Origin: Ministeria vibrans ATCC 50519
Lineage: Eukaryota; Protista; Filasterea
DNA length: 64,000 nucleotides
Direction: 5' to 3'
NCBI GenBank assembly: GCA_943704425.1
Contig: CALSCP010002121.1
Location: forward strand, 106,624 to 170,623
Positions 1,186 to 54,199 of this stretch are shown piece by piece; the stretch's first letter is position 1; every line of letters starts with the position of its first letter. Position numbers and translations under genes: made by a program. The notes below the pieces were generated by a model, which had not been told where the DNA came from, did no database searches, and worked only from the letters and a program-made list of their open reading frames with translations.

Positions 1186-4330
<3,145 letters not shown>

Positions 4331-4675
4331 GAATGCAGAGTTAAAAATAATAAGATTCTATTAGAACAAATTAAAATGGGATGAGATCTTGAGAATCGAT
4401 TTTTTCGTATGAAATGTGTGTTGGAGTATATACGCTCGATCTTAAATATCTTTGGGGGGTTAGTCTATACTCTATGATCGTCGATAGTCGATAGAAGTAT
4501 TGATAATTGTGTTTCTTTCTTTGTAGTTTACACTTCTCTGCTTCGGTCTTATGAGAATAGGAATAAATGAAGCTTAATAAAATTAAATCAAATTATTACT
4601 ATTATTACTATTATTTTTAATATCATGCCTTAGGATGAAAAAGGAGATGTATAACGTTTATTTATTTTCAATGGG

Positions 4676-7682: not shown

Positions 7683-10452
7683 CTATACATAACTATCACC
7701 ATTACCACTGCCATTGTCAGGAGGCGCCAGTGTCACGCGAGGTTCACCCGAAATTTGCGCATTGTCAGTCGTGTCCGCTGAGCCATGGAACACGCCTGAG
7801 GCAGAGAAGACATCGTCGTACGCAGGCAACCCATCAGGATCGTCTTCACCGACGTCGCCCATGGGTAAGGCAGCTGGGGTAGACGATGTGGGAGGCGCAG
7901 GCGACAAAATTACGGTCGCAACGGGTGTAGCCGTGGCTGAGGCTGACGCGGCTGCGGAAGAAGGTGAAGACAAGGCTCCAGGAAGCAAAACAGGGGCAAA
8001 GTGAGGAGAGAAGACGGGATTGACAAAGCCAGCGCCATCGGGACACGCCTGCTCGTAGGTGGGTGGGCCATCGGAGGCATGTGGCGGGGCCAGTAAACCC
8101 CCACCGACGGGCGTGAGGTGCTCGTTGTTGCCGTCAGCGCCGACGAGACGAAGTCCGTCGCGCTGCTGCCGAAGACGGTAGCGTGCCGAGCGGCGTTGCA
8201 TGTAGCCACCAACAGCAGCAATGACAAAGAGGAGCCCGCCAACGCAGAACATGCTGATAAAGACAATGAGGCCAATGGAAAGGGAGAAGGGCGAGGTGCG
8301 TCGCGACGGGTTGTTCGCGCCACCGCCGTCAAGGCTACCCTGCGCCTGGGCACAGGTGTCCCCCGTGAACGAACTGGTGCAGGCGCACTGAAAGTCAGCG
8401 ACAGTTGCGGAGGACATGTCGGGCGACGAGTACTGCAGATCGATGACGACAACGGGCGACAGACACACGCCATTGTCGACCTGCGTCGAGAAGGACACGC
8501 TGATGTCGACCGAGCCGTGCGTGTACCACTGCAGCAGAATGGACTGCGTGACAGGGATGATGTCGACGCGCGTGGCACAGTCGGAACCACCTGCGGCAAA
8601 CAGCGTCGACGAAATGCCCAGCGCAGAGACAACAAGCCACTCGGTGGAGGCGCCCAAATCAGCGTTGGATGTGACGCGCAGAACGCCGCCATCGGTGGAC
8701 GGGTTGAGGAGGCCGTCAAACGAGAAGTGGAGTTGGTTGTTCGAATAGGCGTTGGAGCGTGTGATGGAGCGCGCGTAAGGCTCACCAGCAAGGCACGTGC
8801 CAGAGTGAGCACATGGCGTCGACATACATGGGTCCTCCTGATTGCAGGTGGGTCCCACGTTGCCGGCGGAACACACACAGGCAAAGCTGTTCGCGTAGTC
8901 AACGCACGTGCCGCCGCGCTGGCACGGTTGCGACGCACACTCATCAATGTTTGAGTCGCAAAAGATGCCGGTGAAGCCCGCGGCACACACACACGCGACA
9001 AAGTGACGCTGTGTCGTGCCGTCCTCGATGCAAGTGGCACCATGTTGACAGGGAAGCGATGCACACTCGCCGGCAAAAGTCTCGCAGTTCTCGCCAACGT
9101 ACGTAAGCGGACAGCTGCACTGGTACTCGGCAAACGACTGTGTCATGTTCAGCGAGGCCGTGAGGGTGGGTGCTGCACACACGCCCGCATCGACAATGGA
9201 GGAAAAGGTGAAGAGTAGCTCAAAGGGCGCACCCTTGACACCTGCTTGCATGGCCAGCACACTGGCCGCCGGAATTAGCAGTGTCTCTTCGCGTTGCGCG
9301 CAGTCACTGGCACTGCTAGCAAACAGCTGCGCACTGAAAATCCCCCCAAAGGTGGCAGCGTCGCGCACATCGACAAACTCGGTAGGTGCGCCCAAATCTG
9401 CTATGGTGCTCACAACAAGTTTGGCGGGGGGTTCGGTGCTCGGAACCGGATTAACAATGAAGCCGCTGAAGATGGCGCGCAAGGTTGACGGGTAGTAGAC
9501 ATTCGAGGAGAAGGTGACGGACTCGAAAAAGTTGCGACGTTCAAGAAAGCACGAGGCGCCATTGCTACAGGGCGACGACGAGCAGCCGTCAAAAGTTTCG
9601 CAAAGCGCACCATACGTGTCGGGAGGACATTCACAGGCAAATGAGGCAACGCCCGTCGAGTTGTTGCAGGTACCGCCGTTGATGCAAGGCGACGACGCAC
9701 ACTCGTCGATGTCTTCAAGGCAGTGGTCGCCCCGGTAGCCCGCCGAACAGTCGCACGTGTATCCGCTCACATGATCGTGGCAGGTGGCGCCATTGAAACA
9801 CGGAGAAGAGAGGCACTAAAGTAAAAAGGAGTATAAGTCGAAAAATAAATGAAGTGTCTCAATCAGTTTGTGCATATGTACTTCGTCCAGGTCGGTTTCA
9901 CAGAGGGGCCCAGTGGTACCGGGGATACAGGTGCAGTTGGTGAAGGCGCGGGTGACGGGGTCTTCGGTGCAGTTTCCATCGTAGAAGCACTCAATAGCGG
10001 CACACTCGCCCAGGTACGTCTCGCACGCCAGTCCCGAGTACGTTGGTGGACACTGGCATGAGTGGCCCTCAGGATCCAGGTTGTACGCAAACTCGCTAAG
10101 ATGTATGTATATATAATTATACATAATTATTATATATATATGTGAGTGTAAAGAACAAAGGACAATGGTACGGGGATCAGGTTTGACAGTCGGTGACATT
10201 TAAAGAGACGGCATGGGTGTACCATGAGAGAAAAGGAGCGGCGCAGACAAAGTCATTGACGTTGTTGGTGAAGGAGATTTCAAGAGTGAGAACACCTGTG
10301 CCATCGGTGCGATAGAGCGATTGAAGTTGGGCAATAGAGAGAGAAATGGAGGCAGAGAGGGTGTTGCAGTCGAATGTAGTCGACGAGAAGAGCACTTGGG
10401 TGATACCCAGTGCCGGTATTTCCACAAGCATATACTGTAAATCAATAATAAC

Positions 10453-12761: not shown

Positions 12762-13013
12762 ATGATGGACGATCGATACAGCGAGGCGGACGAGGATGAG
12801 GTGATTCACGAGGCGGAGTTGCCGCTGCCGTCGAGCCAACGGGTCGTGTTCTCGTTTGGCTTTGGCAATCGAATGGCCATTGCTAATAGTACAGGCGGCG
12901 CGTCCACACTGGCTCTTGTGGAATGGGACGACGAAGGGTTCCACTCCACCGAGGTAGGAAGCAACCACGCTGATCCGCATCGAGACAAAATGTCTGTCTC
13001 AAAAATTTATAAC

Positions 13014-13046
<33 letters not shown>

Positions 13047-15252
13047 ACTTGTTTCAAAAAAAAAAAAAACTCTCTCTCTCTCTCACACACACAGCCTCGT
13101 AAGCTGGCGGCCGAGAGTCATGGGGCGTTTATGTCGAAACGGCAGGAAGAGAGGGGAGAGGATAGCGAAGAGACGGGCGGTCGACAGGACCATGGGGCGG
13201 CGGGGGGGACGACGAGCGACGAGGCGTTGGTGAACGAGTCGCGGATGTTTCGTGCCATTTTGCGGGCGTGTGTGGAGCGCATCAACGACGCCCTGCTTGT
13301 CCGACGCAGCCAAAAGCAACACGCTCATGCGTATGGTGAAGACGAGGACGATGAGGCGGCTGCAGCGGCCGCCGACGACGAAGACAGCGAACAGCACATG
13401 CAATTGTATCGGCTGATGGAGCTCGTCTGGCATCTCTGCGAAGTGCTCTTTGTCGATCGTATGCCGGGTGCCACCATCATGGTACAGTTGCTTGAATGGC
13501 TTCAGTGGCATTTTGGAGATGAGCCTCGCGTTGGCCAGATTCTAGCGGCGCGCTTGGCGCACCCCGAGCAGCACGAATCGTACTGGTCGTGCGTTCGACG
13601 ACTCGCTGTGCTGGGCCGCGTCAATGATTGTGCCGAACTGCTTCGGCTGCACAGCGACTACGGGCACTCGCAGGCGCTGCATACGATGGACGAGCTGTTG
13701 CGTCGGATGCCAATGCTGCACGCAGGGCGATCGGCGGCCGAATTTCTGATTGTGTGGTCGCGGTGGCACGACGAGTGTGTGCGCAGCTGCAACACGACGT
13801 TTGCGGCGGGACACAGTACCTTTGGAGGGGATCTTACAGAGGAGTTGCATGTGTTGTGCACCTTGCTGTCGGGCGACGAAGAGCGTTTAGGCGAGCACAC
13901 ACACAAGTGGTACGAGCTGCTCGTGGCCAAGATGCTGTACACGCAGCCGACAGTCAAGTCGTTTGATCTACGCAACTATGTTGACGAGTGTTTGACTGTG
14001 TTTTCCGCTGATGCGCGCACGGGTCTGGACAACATTCTCATTCATTGTATGGAGTTTGACATTCACAAGGTAAGAAGTGCGTTGCATTGTGCCTGAAAAT
14101 TCGGACTGAACGAGTCTTGTAGGTTCTTCGCGAGTGCTCGATTTACATGGGAAGTCGGTGGTTTGTGACGCATCTGACGGATCTGCTTATGCGCAGTGGT
14201 CAGCTGGAGGCACTTCCACTCAAGGCGGGCGGAGACTTGCGTGAGCACTTTATGCTCGACTATGCGAGCAGTCTCGCAATGGCCCCCGGTCTGTGGCCTG
14301 TAAGCAAGTTGTTTTTTTTTTGTGCCTGTGTGTGTGATTTTTGATCTTGTGTATGAATTTGTGTCTGTTTTCGATTTGTTTGTTTGACTTTATACTTTTT
14401 TTTGCGTAGTTGGCGTGTGATTATTTTGCACAGTGCAGTGAGTTTGGCGGAGCGCATCTTGAGGCTGTTTTGGAGCGCATTTCGCCGCTAGGGAATGAGC
14501 GACGGGCGCGCAAGCTCGCACGTCTTGCAGATGCGCACAACCTGCCAGAGACGGCAGCGACGATTGCGCGTGTGGTGGGAGTCCATGCGATGCGACATGG
14601 GCGTCCCGGAACAGCCCTGGGCTGGTTTACGCGTGCACGCGATGTGGTGCGGCTCGAGGCCGTTGCCGATGTGCTTCTGCAGTGCTACGCACAGAGTGGT
14701 GCTTTTACCGGAATGGTTCGTTTCTTGTCATTTCGTTCAATTCAATTTGACTTGCCAATTGTGTGCGTGTTTTTGTCTCTCTTTCTCTCTCACTCTATTT
14801 GACACGACCTCTTTTCTTTTTTCCAGGACGTGATTGATTCCCTTGGGTCAGAGAAGGTGCTGTCGGAGCGACTGTTGTTTTTGGACAAGTACCGCGAGAT
14901 GCACCGATTGTATCAGTCGCGTAGCTTTGTCGACTGTGCTCGTCTGCTTGTGCAGCTCATTGCCAGCAACATTGCGCCTCCCGAGTATGCAATACAACGT
15001 GTGGGGTGACACTCTGTGATGCTATTGTGTGTTGTGTGTAGGTTTCGAGGGACTCTTCTGGTCGACGCTGTGCCCTTGCTGGAGACAGCAGAGTCACCCT
15101 TTACAGCCGAGCAGACGTACGAGCTGATGCGCTGCTGCGAGAATTTGTCACTGGCCTCGTCACAGCCGCAGTCGACTGCGATCACGGCCGATCAGCTGCA
15201 AGTGGTGCGTCTTGCGTTGGCTCGTGCTCTCGCGCGGGCCATTGTAATGTAA
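12762..15252 (+). CDS. NUP85: Nuclear pore complex protein Nup85
   Basis: Motifs LVNESRMF, ELVWHLCEVLF, LLEWLQWHF, WYELLVAKMLYTQP, WFVTHLTDLL, REHFMLDYA, LLVDAVPLL and VRLALARALARAI; multi-exon. Confidence 0.9.
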
Positions 15253-46961: not shown

Positions 46962-48485
46962 ATGAACCAGAGACGTAGGACGAATTGGGTCGAGAGTGAC
47001 GACGAGATGGAAACGCCGGTGGCGTCGCGAGCGTTGGCGGAGACGGTCGCGGCGCAAGAATGGCCGCGGTCGCTCTTTCTGCGCAACTGGGCCGCCTTCT
47101 TCCTGCTGGGCACCATCAACAACCTGGCGTATGTGGTGGTGAATTCGAGTGCCGAGTCGCTGTCCGACTCGTTCTTCGCTTCGAACCTTCTCGGACTCAT
47201 TCCGTGGGCCAACGTCGGCTTTGGCTTTGTCGCGCGCGCAGTCGCGACTGGATTACGCGACGTGGCCCCTTACCCTGTGCGTTTCTTCATGACTGGATCC
47301 ATTCTCCTCGTGGGTCTGCTCATGCTGTCGTTTGCGCCCTCTTTCGGCCTGGTCATCGCTTCCATTGTTGTCTGTGGCTTTTCGTCCAGCTTCGGCGAGT
47401 CCGTCACCCTCGGCTACTTGCGCCTGTTTCCTCCCGAGCTCGTGAATGCCTGGTCAAGTGGCACGGGAATGGCCGGTGTTGCCGGTAGTGCTCTGTATCT
47501 TCTTCTTTCTGGTATGGGCATGACCAATCGTCAGGTGTTTCTCTTCTCATTGCCCAGCGTCGCGCTCTACTGGTTGACATACGTTGTCATTGTCAAGCGG
47601 TCAGATGGCAGTGAAATTCGCGCGGAGACCGATGAACGGGAAGCATTACTGGATCGTGCTGCTATCGACGCGGTTGTACAGGCGGATGACGACGCCAACG
47701 GTAGTCAAGAGGACGACTCCGTGTCTCAGGCGCCCTCGATGACCACGACGCTAGCCAAAGCGACCAAGTTTCCAACCGAATCGTCCTTTAAGCGCTACAT
47801 GCGTTGTACACGCCTTGTCCTTGGTGTATCATGTCAGCTTGCCGCAGTGTACTTCTTCGAGTATGTCATTTCATCAGGATTGAGTGCGAAGGTGAGAAGA
47901 AAAGGATTCTATTGTTACAAACATATACACTTTCACCTGTTCCCTCACTTACACACACACACGCACGCACGCACACACTTACCTTTAATATAGGTGTTGA
48001 CTGCACAACAGCAACAGAGCAAATCATACGTATATGTACATGCGTATGCGCTGCTATCTTTCTGCTACCAGGCAGGCGTCTTTGTATCACGCTCATCCCT
48101 TCAACTGCTCCACATCCACCGCATCTCCATTCTGACGCTTCTCCAAGCAGCCAATTTTGTTCTTTGGATGGTCGACGCTCACTACCGCTTTCTGCCTATT
48201 GGCGCACTTCTTCCCCTCATGGTCTTTGTGGGGCTCTTGGGCGGTGCAATGTATGTCAACGTCTTCTATCTTGTCCTTAACGACCCAGTACGAATCATTT
48301 TGTTATTCTTTTCCTGCTCTTCTCTCTCCTCGTCTTCTTCACCTCAACAATATGTCTCTGTCACGCAGGATATTGCCAATGAAGACCGTGAGTTATGCAT
48401 CAACATTGTTGCGTTTGCCATCACCATTGGCATTACCCTTGGCTGTGCTGCAATCCTTCTGTTCGACAACACCTTCCTCAAGTAA
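46962..48485 (+). CDS. CLN3: Battenin / CLN3 (Btn1) lysosomal membrane protein
   Basis: Motifs FFLLGTINN, SSFGESVTL, WSSGTGMAG, VYFFEYVI, YQAGVFVSRSS, GLLGGAMYVN and EDRELC. Confidence 0.93.
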
Positions 48486-48681
48486 CTCTACCGTATTAAT
48501 AATCATTATAATACTATAGCAATACAGCTTTAATACAGCTACGACTCGTGTACATTAGTCTTTTTGTTACAGAACTGTTCATAGTCGCCAAGCACAATCG
48601 CATTCTAAAAGAACGTTAGAGAAAAAATGTGTGAGAGAGAGAGGATATTGTACGAAAAAGAACAACAGAAAGTGATGCAAC

Positions 48682-48777
48682 TCAGATTGGAAGCGTCAAC
48701 ACAAATCCCACTCGGTAAAGAGGGGACTTTATGACATATGCTTGTCATTTTGTGCCCTCACTCGAGCAACTCATCAT
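48682..48777 (-). ncRNA. Intronic box C/D snoRNA, SNORD27/snR74-like (copy C, diverged)
   Basis: Box C ATGATGA (48777-48771), guide GACAAGCATATG antisense to the 18S rRNA 5' sequence CAUAUGCUUGUC, box D CTGA (48685-48682). Lies in intron 48818-48605. Confidence 0.8.
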
Positions 48778-48938
48778 AGTCTAGTAGACTGTGGTTGCAA
48801 AGTCGATCGACAAAGTACCTTGAAATAAACTTGCAGCGCATTCAAAAAGTACGCACGCATTCTCATCTAAGAAAGCCATACAAAGTTAGAACGAAGAAAC
48901 AAAGAGAGAGACTCAAACAGAACAAATAAACATTTAAT

Positions 48939-49029
48939 TCAGATTGGAAGCATCAACAGAGACTCTGCATACACAGAACCTTATGACATATGCTTGTCAT
49001 TTTGTGCCCTCACTCGAGCAACTCATCAT
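48939..49029 (-). ncRNA. Intronic box C/D snoRNA, SNORD27/snR74-like (copy B)
   Basis: Same boxes and guide as copy C. Lies in intron 49076-48867. Confidence 0.82.
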
Positions 49030-49127
49030 AATAACAGCCTAGTACGCAACGGCTGCAAAGTCGATCGACAAAGTACCTTGAAATAAACTTGCAGCGCATT
49101 CAAAAGTATAAAAGTACGCACGCATTC

Positions 49128-52100
49128 TCATCTAAGAAAGCCATACAAAGTTAGAACGAAGAAACAAAGAGAGAGACTCAAACAAAACAAATAATCGTTT
49201 AATTCAGATTGGAAGCATCAACAGAGACTCTGCATACACAGAACCTTATGACATATGCTTGTCATTTTGTGCCCTCACTCGAGCAACTCATCATAATAAC
49301 GCGCACAGAGAAGACAGAGAAGAGAAAAAGCGAGACAAAAAATAATTGCTTACTCGGAGTGGAAAAGAGCAGAAATGGTGCGCACAAGCTGAGCACGCTT
49401 GTGTGCAATGACGTGGGCGCGGAGGACCGCATTGTTACACTCGTTGAGGTCCTTATCACCGAGCGTCTTGACCAGATGGGCGCCAATGTAGCGAAGATGA
49501 TGCGACAACTGGGTATGCTTGTGTTTGGTGTCGTGGCGCACAAGGGCACTCGAGAGATACTCGAGCATGGGAAGATCGTACATGAAAGAAGATACAATGT
49601 GCGTGACGGCACTTGAATTGTTGAAGGCATTCGAGGCGTGCAGTGAGGCGGGGAGCGCAGATGATGGCGACGGGTCAACATACACTTGGCAGAGACGCAA
49701 CATGGCCGACGAGAGAATGCGAAAGGCAAGGGTGTAGTCGGGCGAGGGCAGCAGCTGACAGGTGGCCACGGCAAGCATGTGGGCACCTTTAGTTTGCAAA
49801 CAGCGCACCAGTCGACGCACAACCAGTGTGTCGAATGCGACGGTCGGCACAGGTGCGCCATTCTGTGCAGGGGTGTTCGAGGCAAAGGTAGAGGCGGCGA
49901 CCGCAACACTTTTGTCGGACCACACTGACATGGATAAGACGGCACTGTAATGACGGGCGGCGTCGTAGTATTCACGCGCCTGGAAGCGCCTGTGTCCCGC
50001 ACGCACACGCCACTCGGCCTGGTGCGGCCACAGATCGCTCCAAGCACGCTCCAACAGCTTGTCACATAGTTGAGCACAAGCAGGTACCAGAGGTGCCGGC
50101 ACCACGGTAGAGTTGGGCTCAACGGCGGTGTCGCTTGCAGTTGGCTCCTTTGACTCGGCCGCCGGATAGCGGTGGTTTTCAATGTCACCGCTTGTTCCAC
50201 TGGCGGGAGCCTTGGCGACTGCGAGAACAAGGCACGAGCACAACGACGCAATACAATCGGGATTGTTGAGGCCTTCAAGGCAGAGGAGTGCAGCACGCGA
50301 CACACCACACATGCCAGTGTGCAACGTTGTCGAGGCGGCCGCACCCAAAGCATCCGACGCAGACGATTCTTCGCCCGCGGCGGCTGCGCGTCCACGACGC
50401 CGTGATTCGGTCTTGTTGTGCACACCATAGAAGAGTTGGGCGACGACTGCGTGTGCCACTCGCACCGGAGGCAACACCGATGTGGTGGTGACGACTGCGG
50501 AGCCGGTGTGGATCATAGGCACAAGCGCATTGCACAAGCTTGCCATTCCACCGTCATTTGAGCACCTAGTAAAACAAAGAAAAAGCAAAAGAAAATAATT
50601 AGTATTGAAAATATTCAAGTTTTTTTTTTTTTTTTTTTTTTTGTTACGTTCGATGTGCGTGAGCAAAAACACGCGCAAGAGCACAGACGTTCTTGTAAAG
50701 TTGTCCATGTTCACTGCGAAACAGACCTTCGTTAAGAAGACGAAGCATGATAGAGTCACAGAGGTGAACGTCAGGGACGATGGCGACGCCCGGCAATGAG
50801 TTGAGCAGGCGAGGGAGATCGTCTGATGAAGCAACGGCAATTTCGTGAAAGGACACGAGCAAACGGTAGAGGTCACGTTGAGGATGTTGTTGAGTTGTTT
50901 CGCCCTGCAAATCGGATAGGATACGACGGGCGGCTACAGTGAAACGAGAGCATCGCCAGACGCGCGACAGACGGAGAAGACAGAGTAAGACGCGCTGCCA
51001 AGGTTGAGACACGTCCAGTAGCAGGGGAATCCAGCTGTGAGCTGGCGGTGGATTCGACGCATCTGCAGTTCCATCTACGTTTGTGGCGACGGCCGCTTGA
51101 TTTTCATACAACACAGCGAGTTCAACACCTGGAACGACGGAATCGCCTGCTACGCGATCACCGGCAAGCAAGGAACGCGCGGCATGAATAACTTGAGCGG
51201 GGTCACGCTCAGTCTGAAGCGTGTGCAGACAAGCGGCAACCGTAGTGCATGGATCGCTGTTGGTCGGGGATGTCGAGTGAGAGGCAATGTCGTGGATGGG
51301 AACGTCGCCAGAGGACGAACTGGCTGCCAGACAATGGATTGCAAGGCGCAGTTCGGGGGTGTCGATACGCTCGACAATGCGTTGTGACCAAAGACGAAGA
51401 CGCTCCATAACGGTTGGACGAAAGAAGATAGGAGCGGCAGAGAGTGAAGTGACGTGACGGGAAAGCGAATCGGCAAGGGTATCGAGTGCTTCGGCGGGGT
51501 GACGGCGAAGTGCGGAGCAAGCCAAGTCGGCAGCGTTGACGGGAGCACCTTGCATTGCTACGAGAATGCTGTTAAGCGCAATAAGTTGCGATGCAAGAGC
51601 AACGGTGAGGCCAAGGTCGTGCGGCACGGCCTGCCGGTAGGGCAGGGAGAGGGAGGAAGATGGATGAAAGGGATTTTCTAAAAGTGCCAGCGAGTAAGAG
51701 GAGAGTCTGATGGCGGTGTCCTCGAAGAAAAGCTCGCACAGCTTCGGGGAGTGTGCCGCTACGAGGTGTTGACACAGTTCCATCGGACTTGCATCACCCG
51801 AGGCGACACCTGGCTGTGGAGTCGTATTGGCAAGGGCATGGCATGCGCGGGTGTAGCCGGCGAGCACATCGCTACTTTCGTCGGACGCGTCACAATCATG
51901 AGCAAGTGCAAACCAAGACAAGGCGGAGGCGTGATCACCGCGCAAAAAGAGTAGCTGAGCAACGTCAATGATAGCCTGGCGGCGCAATGGAGGGGGTAAT
52001 TGTTGTGAGGAACGGGCGTGGTCGGTGACAAACGCGAGGCTCTCGGCGTCGTCGGCAGGAACAGTGAGGCGCGTCAGAAAAGCACGATCGGCGCGTGTTG

Positions 52101-52999
52101 ACACTGAAGGGAGTTCGCTCGAGTCGCTCGCGCCTCCCGTTGTGTTATTTGCAGTGGCTGTCGTCGGTGAAGTCGACTGGAGATCAGCAAGTTCTGCAAC
52201 GAGTTCGGGCAACGAGTGACCACGTTGCGGCAGGCGCACGATCCACAGATGACGACGCAGCAAGTCAAGAAGACGAGTGCTAGGCGAAGTCTGAGGAGGA
52301 CTTGGGACATGCGCGGCCACCATGCTGTCGACGAGAATCCACTGATTGACCAGGTCAAAGTCACTCTCGATGACTTCCAAGGGAATCTCGAGTTGACGCA
52401 CAACACGATGAGCTTTGCACAGTAAATCCATGGCGAGTCGTTCCTGGTCGGGTCGCATGGAGCGCTGCTGCGATGAGATGACGGTGGTGGCCATTGAGAC
52501 GGTGCGGTGGAACGCAGGAGGCCCCACTTCGTTCATGGAGTCGTCGTCAACGTCAAAGAAGCGCGATGCGTGCAGCGTGGGCGGCGCAGGCGACACAGAT
52601 CCCGACGACCCACTGTCGCTTGTGCTTGAGTCTGTGTCGTCGGCGGTCGCAGCAGGGAGAGATGCATTGGCGTCGCTATCGCCATCTTGCGAGGAATCCT
52701 GCAAGTCATAGGAACAAAGAAAAAAAAAATATGAAGACCAAAAAAAGAAAAAAAAAGAGGAAAAAAAAAAGGTTTGAGGGGATGGGATGAAGGTTGATGG
52801 GTAGGAGGGGGGCGACGAGGGAACGATGGTAGCGGACTCGTACGACGCTTCTCATGATCTTGGTTGCTTTTTCGAGAAGCGCGCGAAGGAGGGCGCGCGA
52901 TTCGGATTTCGCATGGGACGGCGACGGATCGGTGCGTATTGCAGTGATTTCCTCATCGAGTTTGTTCGGAAAGAGAACAAACTCGAGGAAATCAGGCAT
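49128..52999 (-). CDS. INTS8: Integrator complex subunit 8-like
   Basis: N-terminal FLEFVL resembles WFEFLL. The C-terminal AVATCQLL...DY..AF, MYDLPMLEYL and DLNECN pattern fits INTS8. The protein ends FHSE* whether or not the intron at 49353 is spliced (stop at 49128-49130 or 49350-49352). Confidence 0.75.
49204..49294 (-). ncRNA. Intronic box C/D snoRNA, SNORD27/snR74-like (copy A)
   Basis: Same boxes and guide as copies B and C. Lies in intron 49353-49132. Confidence 0.82.
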
Positions 53000-53094
53000 A
53001 TGGTATCGAGTTGAAATAAAATAATAAGCTGATTGATCATTGAATTGAATTCATGTGCTGTGAATTGTCTCATATTTTGTTGACCTTTGCCAAC

Positions 53095-54199
53095 ATGAAT
53101 CATTCATGCAGAAAGTGTGGAGCCAAACCGAAAGTTTTGCATCTGTGTGGTAACTGTGAGGCGGTTATGTACTGCGACGAAAAGTGTCAGCGGGCGGACT
53201 GGGCGAACCACCGGGGGCCGTGCAAAGCAAGGGTGGCGGCAGTGAAGGAGGCAAAGCGGACTGAGCTCAATACTCAGCGAGTACTGGATCATTACCGCCA
53301 GGCTCCCGAAGAGTTTGACAAAATGGTGCCTGCCTCGTGGAAGATGGCGGAGAGCGACGACGAGGATGACGACGAGGATGCAAGTGGCGTAAAACAGTCA
53401 GTGTCGGCCGAGACGAAGCAACCGTTGCACATCGAGGTGGAGTCGCAAGGAGAGGGCGACGCACACGCACATGCACACGCAACGGAGGAGGTGGATCGAC
53501 CACGGATGTCGCTGTATCGTCTTGAAACACCCTCCGTGTTTGTGTCGCGTATTCATGCGAGTCCGACCGAGACGCTTTCCGACTCGTTTACCGCAGTCGA
53601 AGGCGGCAGTAAGCCAGCCAAAGTAGCATCGACTCGGCCCGACAAGTTGCGAGTGTCTGTGTTCATGCCAAAGACACGCGGTGCGTCGTGTGTTCACAAC
53701 GTGTACATTCGCGACGAGCGTCGTCTGACGGTCGAGGCAAATGGCTACCTGCTCGAGGAGTACACGCTGCCTTACGACGTGGAAAGCAGCACGATGGGGT
53801 TGAAGTATGTTAAGGACAAGCACAAGCTTGTGGTTGAACTGAAGGTGTGTCAACCCGACGTGGCGATGGAGACGGGGATAGCGCCGATGCACGTGGAGGA
53901 CAACGCGGATGGGGGCAACGGGACGTGTGATGAGAGTTGTGACAAGGAAGATGTGGAATTGGTAGAAGAAGAGGCAGTGAAGAGTTTGACGAAGAAGGCG
54001 CTGACGAGTGAGGCGATTGTTCCGGCGTTTGAGTTGGGTCAAACGAACGACATGTTGACCATTGTCATTTGTGTGAGTGCGATTCATGCAGCGTCTGTGA
54101 CTGCTGTTGTCATGGGACAGGCAAGAAGAGAGAGAAAGTGTGTGTGTGTTAGTGTGAGTGTTAGTGTTAGTGTTAGTGAGTGAGTGTTAGTGTTAGTGA

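Follow-up and report, generated by a model that had tools for sequence, protein, structure and literature searches.

The INTS8-like gene and the predicted intron array

The window, meaning here the whole stretch of 64,000 nucleotides from Ministeria vibrans ATCC 50519 that was analyzed (contig CALSCP010002121.1 of the assembly GCA_943704425.1, positions 106,624 to 170,623 of the forward strand), contains an INTS8-like gene and a CLN3 gene in convergent orientation. The gap between them holds an array of three tandem units of the form GT...CTAAC...TAG, which a script run on the window sequence placed on the minus strand, directly 3' of the INTS8-like stop codon. The ORF upstream of the array matches the Pfam domain TPR_INTS8 (E = 2.1e-15), and an 82-nt intron (50647-50566) connects the last INTS8-like exon to a 686-codon ORF (50644-52704). 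The features of the array and its surroundings, with positions relative to the first letter of the window, are as follows:

49350-50565, minus strand: final coding exon of the INTS8-like gene, ending with the TAA stop codon at 49352-49350 (Pfam TPR_INTS8, PF25756, E = 2.1e-15)
49132-49353, minus strand: predicted intron 1, 222 nt, with the donor GA/GTAAGC overlapping the stop codon and CTAAC 19 nt before the TAG acceptor
49204-49294, minus strand: candidate snoRNA copy A, box C to box D, 91 nt (model R1, 27.2 bits, E = 8.6e-4)
49252-49263, minus strand: 12-nt guide of copy A, antisense to 18S 25-36, followed by one nucleotide and then a degenerate D' box (CAUA)
49077-49131, minus strand: mini-exon 2, 55 nt, whose nucleotides 2-4 would form a TGA stop codon once spliced
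48867-49076, minus strand: predicted intron 2, 210 nt, with the donor AAG/GTACTT, CTAAC and TAG
48939-49029, minus strand: candidate snoRNA copy B, the same as copy A from box C to box D (model R1)
48987-48998, minus strand: 12-nt guide of copy B
48819-48866, minus strand: mini-exon 3, 48 nt
48605-48818, minus strand: predicted intron 3, 214 nt, with the donor AAG/GTACTT; although its 3' portion no longer resembles that of introns 1 and 2, it has CTAAC, a pyrimidine tract and TAG
48682-48777, minus strand: candidate snoRNA copy C, 96 nt, with boxes and guide unchanged, a different hairpin sequence and a C'-like UGACGC (model R1, 21.0 bits, E = 0.016)
48735-48746, minus strand: 12-nt guide of copy C
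48500-48604, minus strand: putative terminal exon, with an ATTAAA-like signal, adjoining the convergent CLN3 stop codon at 48485

The INTS8 gene was searched one exon at a time, and the spliced protein and 3' UTR were only translated from the window. A word-indexed search recovered no homologue of the N-terminal exon (686 aa), and with the C-terminal exon (404 aa) phmmer was equally negative over 1.84 billion representatives; neither the INTS8 exon searches nor CLN3-based synteny detected an orthologous INTS8 locus. The locus of the CLN3 homologue most similar by identity (L001) is without INTS8 or a snoRNA nearby. The closest relatives of the CLN3 protein, which are only 38-46% identical, come from filastereans, sequences named like choanoflagellate transcriptomes, and nucleariids.

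An earlier note on this DNA had delineated three introns with the boundaries, donors, CTAAC elements, TAG acceptors and 55- and 48-nt spacer exons listed above, each enclosing an ATGATGA...CTGA pair; a script returned every one of these coordinates, as well as the note's distances of 72, 72 and 77 nt between box D and the acceptor, counted from the end of CUGA. There is one CTAAC per intron, whose branch A lies 19, 19 and 11 nt before the TAG acceptor and 53, 53 and 66 nt from box D. In the fungal orthologues described below, the corresponding distances from box D are 51-56 nt to the branch A and 60-68 nt to the 3' splice site, and a position about 50 nt upstream of the branch point is known to be optimal for a snoRNA (PMC8162545). 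Of random positions, 0.1% have the composite 3' splice signal and 1.6-4.7% a donor-like motif; the array combines two independent 3' signals with two independent donors, in the right order, and these intron signals are far beyond chance. The confirmed examples of introns in the window were those of INTS8 and CLN3 only, and an ORF-based intron finder tried for deriving the genome's splice consensus was discarded as too noisy.

These signals make it very improbable that the snoRNAs are instead cut from an unspliced polycistronic precursor by an endonuclease of the RNase III type and exonucleases, like yeast snR72-78, with the splice motifs being incidental. Yeast snR74 is processed in this manner (Qu et al. 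1999, cited in PMC10557570), and the GTACTT donors of introns 2 and 3 are indeed weak, deviating from GTRAGT at +4 and +5. However, the 3' composite, with its background of ~0.001, is found in the downstream segments of both types, A/B and the diverged C; of just 36 CTAAC elements in 128 kb, three belong to the array; box D and the branch point are as far apart as in the intronic fungal orthologues; and around the donor of introns 2 and 3 the units share an identical block of 52 nt amid neighboring sequence that has diverged. A layout with one snoRNA per short intron and this box D-branch point geometry would favor splicing-coupled snoRNP assembly, with the likely pathway running from splicing through lariat debranching to exonucleolytic trimming down to the snoRNP.

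Box C/D elements and the 18S rRNA guide

A box C/D RNA is expected to carry RUGAUGA close to its 5' end and, at a distance of 60-130 nt, CUGA close to its 3' end. All three copies display this pattern: AUGAUGA and CUGA are exact in each, the distance from the start of box C to the end of box D being 91, 91 and 96 nt, and AUGAUGA lies at positions 60, 48 and 42 of introns 1, 2 and 3. Every copy has the same layout: box C, a 19-nt spacer, the 12-nt guide, one nucleotide, a degenerate D' box (CAUA), a hairpin of 8 bp, a C'-like UGAUGC or UGACGC and, 7 nt further on, box D. The D' box agrees with CUGA at two of four positions. Strong divergence of D' and C' boxes is common, and in snR74 the internal pairing is conserved, with sequence that supports the structure (PMC3116282).

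The guide 12-mer, GACAAGCATATG, occurs three times against 0.33 expected, a count reached by 0 of 100 shuffles, and forms a perfect 12-bp duplex with its target, CAUAUGCUUGUC, at nucleotides 25-36 of the 18S rRNA of locus L003 (Rfam SSU_rRNA_eukarya, 1791 bits). A C/D guide is expected to have at least 10 nt of antisense adjoining D or D', with the modified nucleotide opposite the fifth position upstream; in the window copies the fifth position upstream of the D'-like CAUA pairs with 18S A28. Both the antisense match to conserved 18S sequence and the snR74/SNORD27 adenosine that the earlier note had reached by the fifth-nucleotide rule hold against an actual 18S sequence. The twelve rRNA loci used were chosen by record title from a set of contaminant rDNA contigs, some of which, such as those of gut or oral isolates and MAGs, may be human rDNA and were set aside. 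The twelve comprise two records of Candidatus Burkholderia, whose rDNA was taken to be that of plants, together with marine, environmental and unassigned MAGs and isolates. One contig (L073) bears closely spaced tandem rDNA units, unlike the human arrangement. A de novo scan for box C together with an 11-mer complementary to conserved rRNA retrieved only these three sites in 128 kb. The 19-nt spacer has no conserved extra base-pairing with rRNA, the exact 22-mer spanning guide and D' has no match in the metagenomes, and the 18S pattern has none in viral contigs. A second guide upstream of box D was also considered and rejected: only wobble-rich matches of 9-12 nt at inconsistent rRNA positions were obtained, so the element is better read as a C'-like box with a 7-nt spacer.

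Copies A and B are identical over the 91 nt from box C to box D, and copy C differs from them mainly in the internal hairpin. This hairpin still folds in copy C despite a sequence unlike that of A and B, with 8 bp in both versions and changes on both strands. Terminal stem duplexes formed by the 12-nt flanks (-3.2, -2.2 and -0.6 kcal/mol) are no better than those of shuffled sequences, and a poor terminal stem is common in intronic snoRNAs. The global minimum free energies of copies A and B are likewise no better than shuffles and that of copy C has z = -1.9; unremarkable values of this kind are expected for C/D RNAs.

The Tandem Repeats Finder (TRF) describes the array as a 265-bp period with 2.2 copies and 92% matches. 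It probably grew by tandem duplication of a unit comprising the snoRNA, the 3' part of the intron, the mini-exon and the 5' part of the next intron. The flanks of A and B differ, including a 7-nt indel in the mini-exon, and since the units differ by both substitutions and indels the array is not a simple collapse or expansion error of the assembly. It is hard to credit that we are dealing with a chance resemblance, a decayed repeat devoid of RNA function, or an assembly artifact that turned one copy into three. In favor of such an explanation are the sub-threshold Rfam scores (see below) and the identity of copies A and B over the mature RNA, which might in principle stem from a duplication in the assembly. 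Against it, box C, the guide, the C'-like box and box D are invariant among the copies while the flanks and the hairpin have diverged, the hairpin having been kept through changes on both strands, and the specificity controls, namely the 12-mer count, the R1 model and the de novo scan, speak against chance.

Relationship to snR74, CD21 and SNORD27

The predicted target points to a known group of snoRNAs. snR74 guides 18S Am28 (PMC5699541); CD21 of N. crassa is intronic, has a D' guide to 18S-Am28 and has been equated with snR74 and U27 (PMC2780460); and SNORD27, located in introns of SNHG1, guides 18S Am27 (PMC13507652). The earlier note had proposed a SNORD27/snR74-type identity and named the Rfam SNORD27 model as a check. 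In a 1.4-kb search this model (RF00086) gave the three copies 22.9, 20.6 and 20.6 bits (E = 0.55-2) against a gathering threshold of 52, which makes SNORD27 the top Rfam family for all three copies, albeit below threshold. A search of the whole window with Rfam returned nothing at the gathering threshold and nothing at E <= 0.5; no neighbors of the snR75 or snR73 type were found in the window at E <= 0.5, and the snR75-snR74-snR73 or SNHG1 neighborhood is not matched. Another family, Afu_335 (RF01513), was dismissed as a weak match (16.6-19.1 bits) having only the boxes and short runs in common with the window copies.

The fungal relatives put the Rfam score in perspective. Box C and the guide recur together in twelve metagenome loci, which proved to be fungal clusters of the snR72-78 type; there the element occupies the place of snR74, following snR75 and, in one case (L110), lying between snR75 and snR73. 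RF00086 has no match to these syntenic fungal snR74 orthologues at E <= 0.01, so the threshold test has low power outside the taxa of its seed. The fungal orthologues have a degenerate D' box at the same offset as the window copies, immediately followed by a hairpin, and then a C'-like box and box D; their D' (CCAA or CCGA) and C' (xGACGA) are as degenerate as those in the window. The D'-C' hairpin is found at the same place in seven of seven fungal orthologues, with 95% of cells paired, and it covaries; 0 of 500 shuffles reach this level of pairing or the covariation score. A covariance model, R1, built from these seven fungal sequences only, recovers the window copies end to end (model positions 1-93) with 27.2, 27.2 and 21.0 bits (E = 8.6e-4, 8.6e-4 and 0.016), and has no match in the window besides them at E <= 1. 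As the seeds of R1 were themselves retrieved with the box C and guide pattern of the window snoRNA, the share of the score due to these two elements is circular.

The identity proposed in the earlier note is supported by the guide with the fifth-nucleotide rule, the fungal-type architecture, R1 and the splice signals; the Rfam score stays below threshold, with a model that also misses the fungal orthologues. Judging from sequence, the RNA is the predicted functional equivalent, and probably a homologue, of yeast snR74, Neurospora CD21 and human SNORD27 (U27). If expressed, the corresponding snoRNP would 2'-O-methylate the equivalent of A27/A28 in 18S rRNA, as expected from the fifth-nucleotide rule.

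The predicted host transcript and comparison with known systems

The first donor overlaps the INTS8-like stop codon, and the simplest host is therefore the INTS8 pre-mRNA; it is on this overlap only that the prediction of INTS8 mRNA as the apparent host rests. We consider it likely that the array comprises three tandem intronic box C/D snoRNAs equivalent to snR74/CD21/SNORD27, most simply hosted by an INTS8 pre-mRNA with a three-intron 3' UTR. As the earlier note had noticed, the protein would end in ...FHSE* whether or not splicing takes place: translation of both readings gave identical ends, with the genomic TAA at 49352-49350 serving in one and the spliced GA/A TGA in the other.

It is possible, though unlikely, that the snoRNAs and introns are real and belong to a different host, either a separate, mostly non-coding transcript of the UHG/GAS5/SNHG type or a read-through of the INTS8-CLN3 gap, with INTS8 mRNAs ending before or within the first unit. 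In favor of such a host, the fungal and human homologues of snR74/U27 reside in non-coding multi-snoRNA host genes (PMC2780460; PMC13507652), ATTAAA is found after box D of copies A and B, and the joining of INTS8 coding sequence and mini-exons on one molecule is a prediction. However, the best first donor, GTAAGC, overlaps the stop codon, which would force a separate transcript to begin within INTS8 coding sequence, and only 55 nt lie between the stop codon and box C of copy A. Moreover, splicing restores the same stop codon, which looks tolerated or selected.

With the INTS8 pre-mRNA as host, the first exon junction would lie upstream of the spliced stop codon and the later ones 51 and 99 nt after the spliced TGA. 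The junction criterion for NMD-sensitive hosts is a position more than 50-55 nt downstream of the termination codon; the junction at 51 nt is borderline and only the last one, at 99 nt, is plainly beyond the limit of the >50-nt rule. In human cells NMD is best predicted by an intron that lies in the 3' UTR at more than 50 nt from the stop codon (PMC5238794), and snoRNA hosts are enriched among NMD targets (PMC4233243). A coupling of INTS8 mRNA to snoRNA output through NMD might be inferred from this layout. A stronger version, which we regard as rather improbable, is that the INTS8 mRNA may be the obligatory host of snR74/U27 and that splicing of its 3' UTR reciprocally tunes how much of an Integrator subunit and how much of a ribosome-modifying snoRNA is produced. 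Making the snoRNA would then always yield an INTS8 mRNA whose stop codon is followed by exon junctions. This mRNA would be destined either for NMD or for translation of a 42-codon ATGA-overlapping ORF that would clear the junctions, and a stop codon overlapping the donor would be kept for the sake of an unchanged protein from both isoforms.

On the reading we prefer, this is a familiar arrangement, soundly annotated and involving no new mechanism: an intron-encoded snR74/U27, tandemly amplified and apparently located in a 3' UTR. It provides a methylation-guide annotation for a poorly sampled eukaryotic lineage and extends to that lineage the range of two features, the snR74 architecture seen in fungi and the placement of a single snoRNA in each intron with box D some 50 nt ahead of the branch point. 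The comparison also reveals a weakness of RF00086, in that the syntenic snR74 orthologues of fungi escape it. A predicted 3' UTR of a coding gene that has three snoRNA introns and a donor within the stop codon is a natural test case, and one might imagine the array showing whether snoRNA hosting and NMD are coupled outside animals.

Mammalian SNORD115/116 are tandem arrays of repeated units, each with a snoRNA-bearing intron and a short non-coding exon. The window array resembles them in the amplification of dosage by unit duplication, but has only three copies, encodes a canonical rRNA guide rather than an orphan, and is attached to a coding gene. Known NMD-sensitive snoRNA hosts and 3' UTR-intron targets are alike in having junctions after the stop codon, which are predicted here from sequence only. 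Yeast snR74, from the snR72-snR78 polycistron, has the same 18S Am28 target and a conserved internal structure (PMC5699541; PMC3116282), but is non-intronic: Rnt1 and Rat1 free it from a polycistronic precursor that is transcribed independently (PMC10557570). Human SNORD27 (U27, RF00086), with 18S Am27 as its target, has the guide core, the one-snoRNA-per-intron layout and an NMD-prone class of host in common with the window (PMC13507652; PMC4233243). It differs in a canonical CUGA D' box, a short spacer and a non-coding host with eight different snoRNAs, and the window copies attain less than half of its gathering score. In fungal snR74, i.e. CD21 and the environmental loci L103-L112 with their UHG-like multi-snoRNA hosts, we find the same box C, D'-side A28 guide, offset of the degenerate D' box, D'-C' hairpin, C'-like xGAYGM and box D as in the window, along with a separate intron for every snoRNA, small exons and a branch point about 50-55 nt beyond box D (PMC2780460). 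Box C and the guide are 19 nt apart in the window as against 12-14 nt in the fungi, and C' and box D 7 nt as against 11-14 nt. Further, the fungal clusters consist of different snoRNAs (Afu_300, snR76, snR75, snR74 and snR73) in UHG-like host genes, whereas the window has three copies of a single snoRNA in what is apparently the 3' UTR of a protein-coding gene.

Three intron-like units and their splicing signals

When the minus strand of the region 48400-49600 was read directly and all features were re-derived by script, the coordinates, donors, branch points, acceptors, spacers and box distances that the earlier note had proposed for three snoRNA-hosting introns were reproduced to the base. 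The units, which carry snoRNA copies A, B and C respectively, are:

49353-49132, minus strand: GT...AG unit 1, 222 nt
49076-48867, minus strand: GT...AG unit 2, 210 nt
48818-48605, minus strand: GT...AG unit 3, 214 nt

They are separated by spacers of 55 and 48 nt (mini-exons 2 and 3), and Tandem Repeats Finder reports a period of 265 bp with 2.2 copies and 92% matches. Each unit has a single CTAAC, with its A 19, 19 and 11 nt upstream of the TAG acceptor in units 1, 2 and 3, and a single AUGAUGA 59, 47 and 41 nt downstream of the donor; from the end of the CUGA to the acceptor there are 72, 72 and 77 nt.

These signals are rare in the surrounding DNA. The composite 3' signal, a CTAAC 35-80 nt downstream followed by a pyrimidine tract and YAG, has a frequency of 0.1% at random positions of the window, where correctly placed donors have backgrounds of 1.6% (GTAAG-type) and 4.7% (GTAMKY-type), and 3 of the 36 occurrences of CTAAC in 128 kb fall in the array. 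The array contains two independent 3' signals, one of A/B type and one of C type with surroundings diverged beyond alignment, and two independent donors, and their order around the snoRNAs is the correct one. The units share an identical 52-nt block that comprises the mini-exon end and the donor of introns 2 and 3, and differ in the adjoining sequence. From box D to the branch A the distance is 53, 53 and 66 nt in copies A, B and C, the optimal position of box D being ~50 nt upstream of the branch point (PMC8162545); it is similar (51-56 nt) in fungal snR74 orthologues, each lying in its own intron. The predicted geometry thus matches that of known intronic C/D snoRNAs. At the level of sequence, the rare 3' signals, the donors and the box D-branch point geometry bear out the three-intron reading, which we consider well supported; splicing precisely at the weak GTACTT donors of introns 2 and 3 is a prediction.

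Two further motifs were observed. A perfect 10-nt palindrome, GTCGATCGAC, lies within the identical 52-nt block at 49069-49060 and 48811-48802 (minus strand), 7 nt inside introns 2 and 3. The hexamer ATTAAA, a common poly(A)-signal variant, directly follows box D in copies A and B (49203-49198 and 48938-48933, minus strand) and is absent in C; intronic polyadenylation could compete with splicing there.

Guide, target and snoRNA identity

The window has three occurrences of the guide 12-mer GACAAGCATATG, where 0.33 would be expected, and 0/100 shuffles reach this count. As 18S reference we used eukaryotic rDNA on contigs that contaminate bacterial assemblies. Some of these contigs may be human, and those from human-associated sources were left out; the comparison covered twelve loci chosen by record titles: two from Candidatus Burkholderia (taken to carry plant rDNA) and the others from marine, environmental and unassigned MAGs or isolates. 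In the reference contig L003, where Rfam SSU_rRNA_eukarya matches 2635-4444 with 1791 bits, the guide target CAUAUGCUUGUC occupies 18S positions 25-36. After the guide and a single U, the copies have CAUA as a D'-like box, in the place where SNORD27 has CUGA. The fifth nucleotide upstream of this CAUA is a U pairing with 18S A28, in agreement with the A27/A28 target proposed earlier. This site is methylated by yeast snR74 (PMC5699541), by N. crassa CD21 via its D' guide (PMC2780460) and, numbered A27, by human SNORD27 (PMC13507652). A de novo scan of both window strands for box C plus an 11-mer complementary to rRNA (11-mers conserved across 3 or more reference rDNAs) returned just the three array sites.

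The survey of rDNA-bearing contigs (L002-L081) also revealed, among contigs filed as bacterial or archaeal genomes or MAGs, more than 100 with an exact match to the 5' end of eukaryotic 18S rDNA, a sign that these assemblies are contaminated with eukaryotic DNA; L003 has the complete 18S and the beginning of 5.8S.

Elsewhere in the copies, no consistent rRNA target was found for the conserved stretch before box D as a second guide, and this stretch is best read as a putative C'-like box with a 7-nt spacer. The 19-nt spacer 3' of box C has no conserved rRNA complement. The terminal stems of the three copies are weak. Between D' and C' the sequences of A/B and C differ, yet 8 bp of a hairpin form in each.

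At gathering thresholds Rfam gave no match. In a local search by E-value, all three copies have SNORD27 (RF00086) as their best family, but at 20.6-22.9 bits, under the gathering value of 52, and the bulk of this score comes from the guide itself. A metagenome scan with the pattern box C, 12-28-nt gap, guide recovered 12 loci with fungal-type snR72-78 clusters, scoring strongly for Afu_300, Afu_513/snR76 and snR75. The guide-bearing element lies 3' of snR75, and in locus L110, where snR73 is above the Rfam threshold, exactly between snR75 and snR73, the snR74 slot. Despite their A28 guide, the elements in the snR74 slot of L103-L112 gave no RF00086 match at E <= 0.01. RF00086 has a sensitivity gap for these fungal elements, and as it misses even syntenic orthologues, its failure says little about the window copies.

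All 7/7 distinct fungal sequences and both window variants have one layout: box C, spacer, guide, one U, a degenerate D' box (CAUA in the window, CCAA or CCGA in the fungal sequences), a hairpin that begins immediately 3' of this box, a C'-like xGAYGM box, 7-14 nt and box D. The fungal hairpin covaries, with 95% of cells paired and 4/6 pairs changing on both sides, and 0/500 shuffles attain the observed pairing or covariation score. Previous work describes both structure-supporting conservation of the snR74 sequence and C'/D' motifs that diverge strongly (PMC3116282). When the window was searched with R1, a covariance model whose seeds were all fungal sequences fished out by the box C and guide pattern, the three copies matched over their full length and nothing else did; they scored 27.2, 27.2 and 21.0 bits (E 8.6e-4, 8.6e-4 and 0.016). 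The layout, the R1 matches and the guide specificity support the snR74/SNORD27-type identity first suggested, and we regard the array as a real feature, predicted to be a tandemly triplicated, intron-encoded snR74/U27-type box C/D snoRNA.

Host gene and neighbourhood

The ORF ending at the array matches Pfam TPR_INTS8 (E 2.1e-15), and an 82-nt intron (50647-50566), with a run of ~25 A at ~50640-50618 (minus strand), connects it to a 686-codon ORF upstream. Its frame terminates CAC TCC GAG TAA, with TAA at 49352-49350, and the donor GTAAGC at 49353 consists of the last G of GAG plus TAAGC, thus overlapping the stop. Splicing of unit 1 gives GA/A TGA; translation confirmed that the protein end ...FHSE* is the same in spliced and unspliced mRNA, as had been noted. 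With the first donor built into the stop codon and the box C of copy A just 55 nt past the stop, the INTS8 pre-mRNA is the simplest predicted host. The feature had been described correctly, and the array apparently forms the 3' UTR of the INTS8-like gene, a host role suggested by the position of the stop-overlapping donor.

In the spliced model the stop occupies nucleotides 2-4 of exon 2 and is followed by two junctions, at distances of 51 and 99 nt. NMD in human cells is best predicted by a 3' UTR intron lying more than 50 nt past the stop, and NMD targets are enriched in snoRNA hosts (PMC5238794; PMC4233243). Given these positions, one of them borderline, and the human precedents, coupling of the array to NMD, which we infer entirely, is plausible.

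The spliced model (49131-48580, minus strand) also has an ATG overlapping the new stop (ATGA) that starts a 42-codon ORF spanning both 3' UTR junctions and ending in the terminal exon, as happens in 4.5% of shuffles. Splicing from donor 1 to acceptor 3 would, as read by eye, lengthen INTS8 by about 30 residues.

INTS8 database searches were run exon by exon, and the joined protein and 3' UTR were translated locally from the window. Searches for an orthologous INTS8 locus gave no match with the N-terminal exon and none with the C-terminal exon among 1.84 billion representatives; the contig of the CLN3 homologue most similar by identity is not syntenic.

CLN3 (battenin) converges on the array with its stop at 48485, so that the array fills most of the 864-nt gap between the convergent genes. 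Its best homologues, 38-46% identical, are from Pigoraptor 'Opistho-2', Capsaspora, nucleariid Nk52, an ENA contig and transcriptome entries judged choanoflagellate-like from their names. A CLN3 intron of ~101 nt at 47893-47993 (plus strand) is rich in (CA)n/(CACG)n; as the seeming in-frame stop between the two CLN3 ORFs is the TAG acceptor of this intron, a pseudogene or a recoding event is ruled out. A zf-MYND and PIH1 CS-like domain protein (53053-54183, plus strand) lies head to head with the INTS8-like gene, ~350 bp apart. PIH1-family proteins are R2TP cofactors in box C/D snoRNP assembly (PMC10557570), and this proximity to the array is probably a coincidence. Further ORFs are:

1396-2961, minus strand: GARS-AIRS purine-synthesis enzyme
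7683-9770, minus strand: EGF-repeat protein
12762-14096, plus strand: Nup85

These ORFs fit a holozoan-like protist with long exons and few short introns. Together with the CLN3 homologues, the genes of the window assign it to a compact, intron-poor, holozoan-like unicellular eukaryote and not to human.

Relation to known arrangements

Only two points are mildly unusual, a donor that overlaps the stop codon and the use of a protein-coding 3' UTR as apparent host. One snoRNA per intron, mini-exons, tandem amplification and NMD-prone hosts are all precedented, as are the degenerate D' box and internal stem for snR74. As every element has precedent, the array is a further example of a known arrangement, and the intronic fungal snR74 orthologues, with comparable spacing from box D to the branch point, likewise have one snoRNA per intron.
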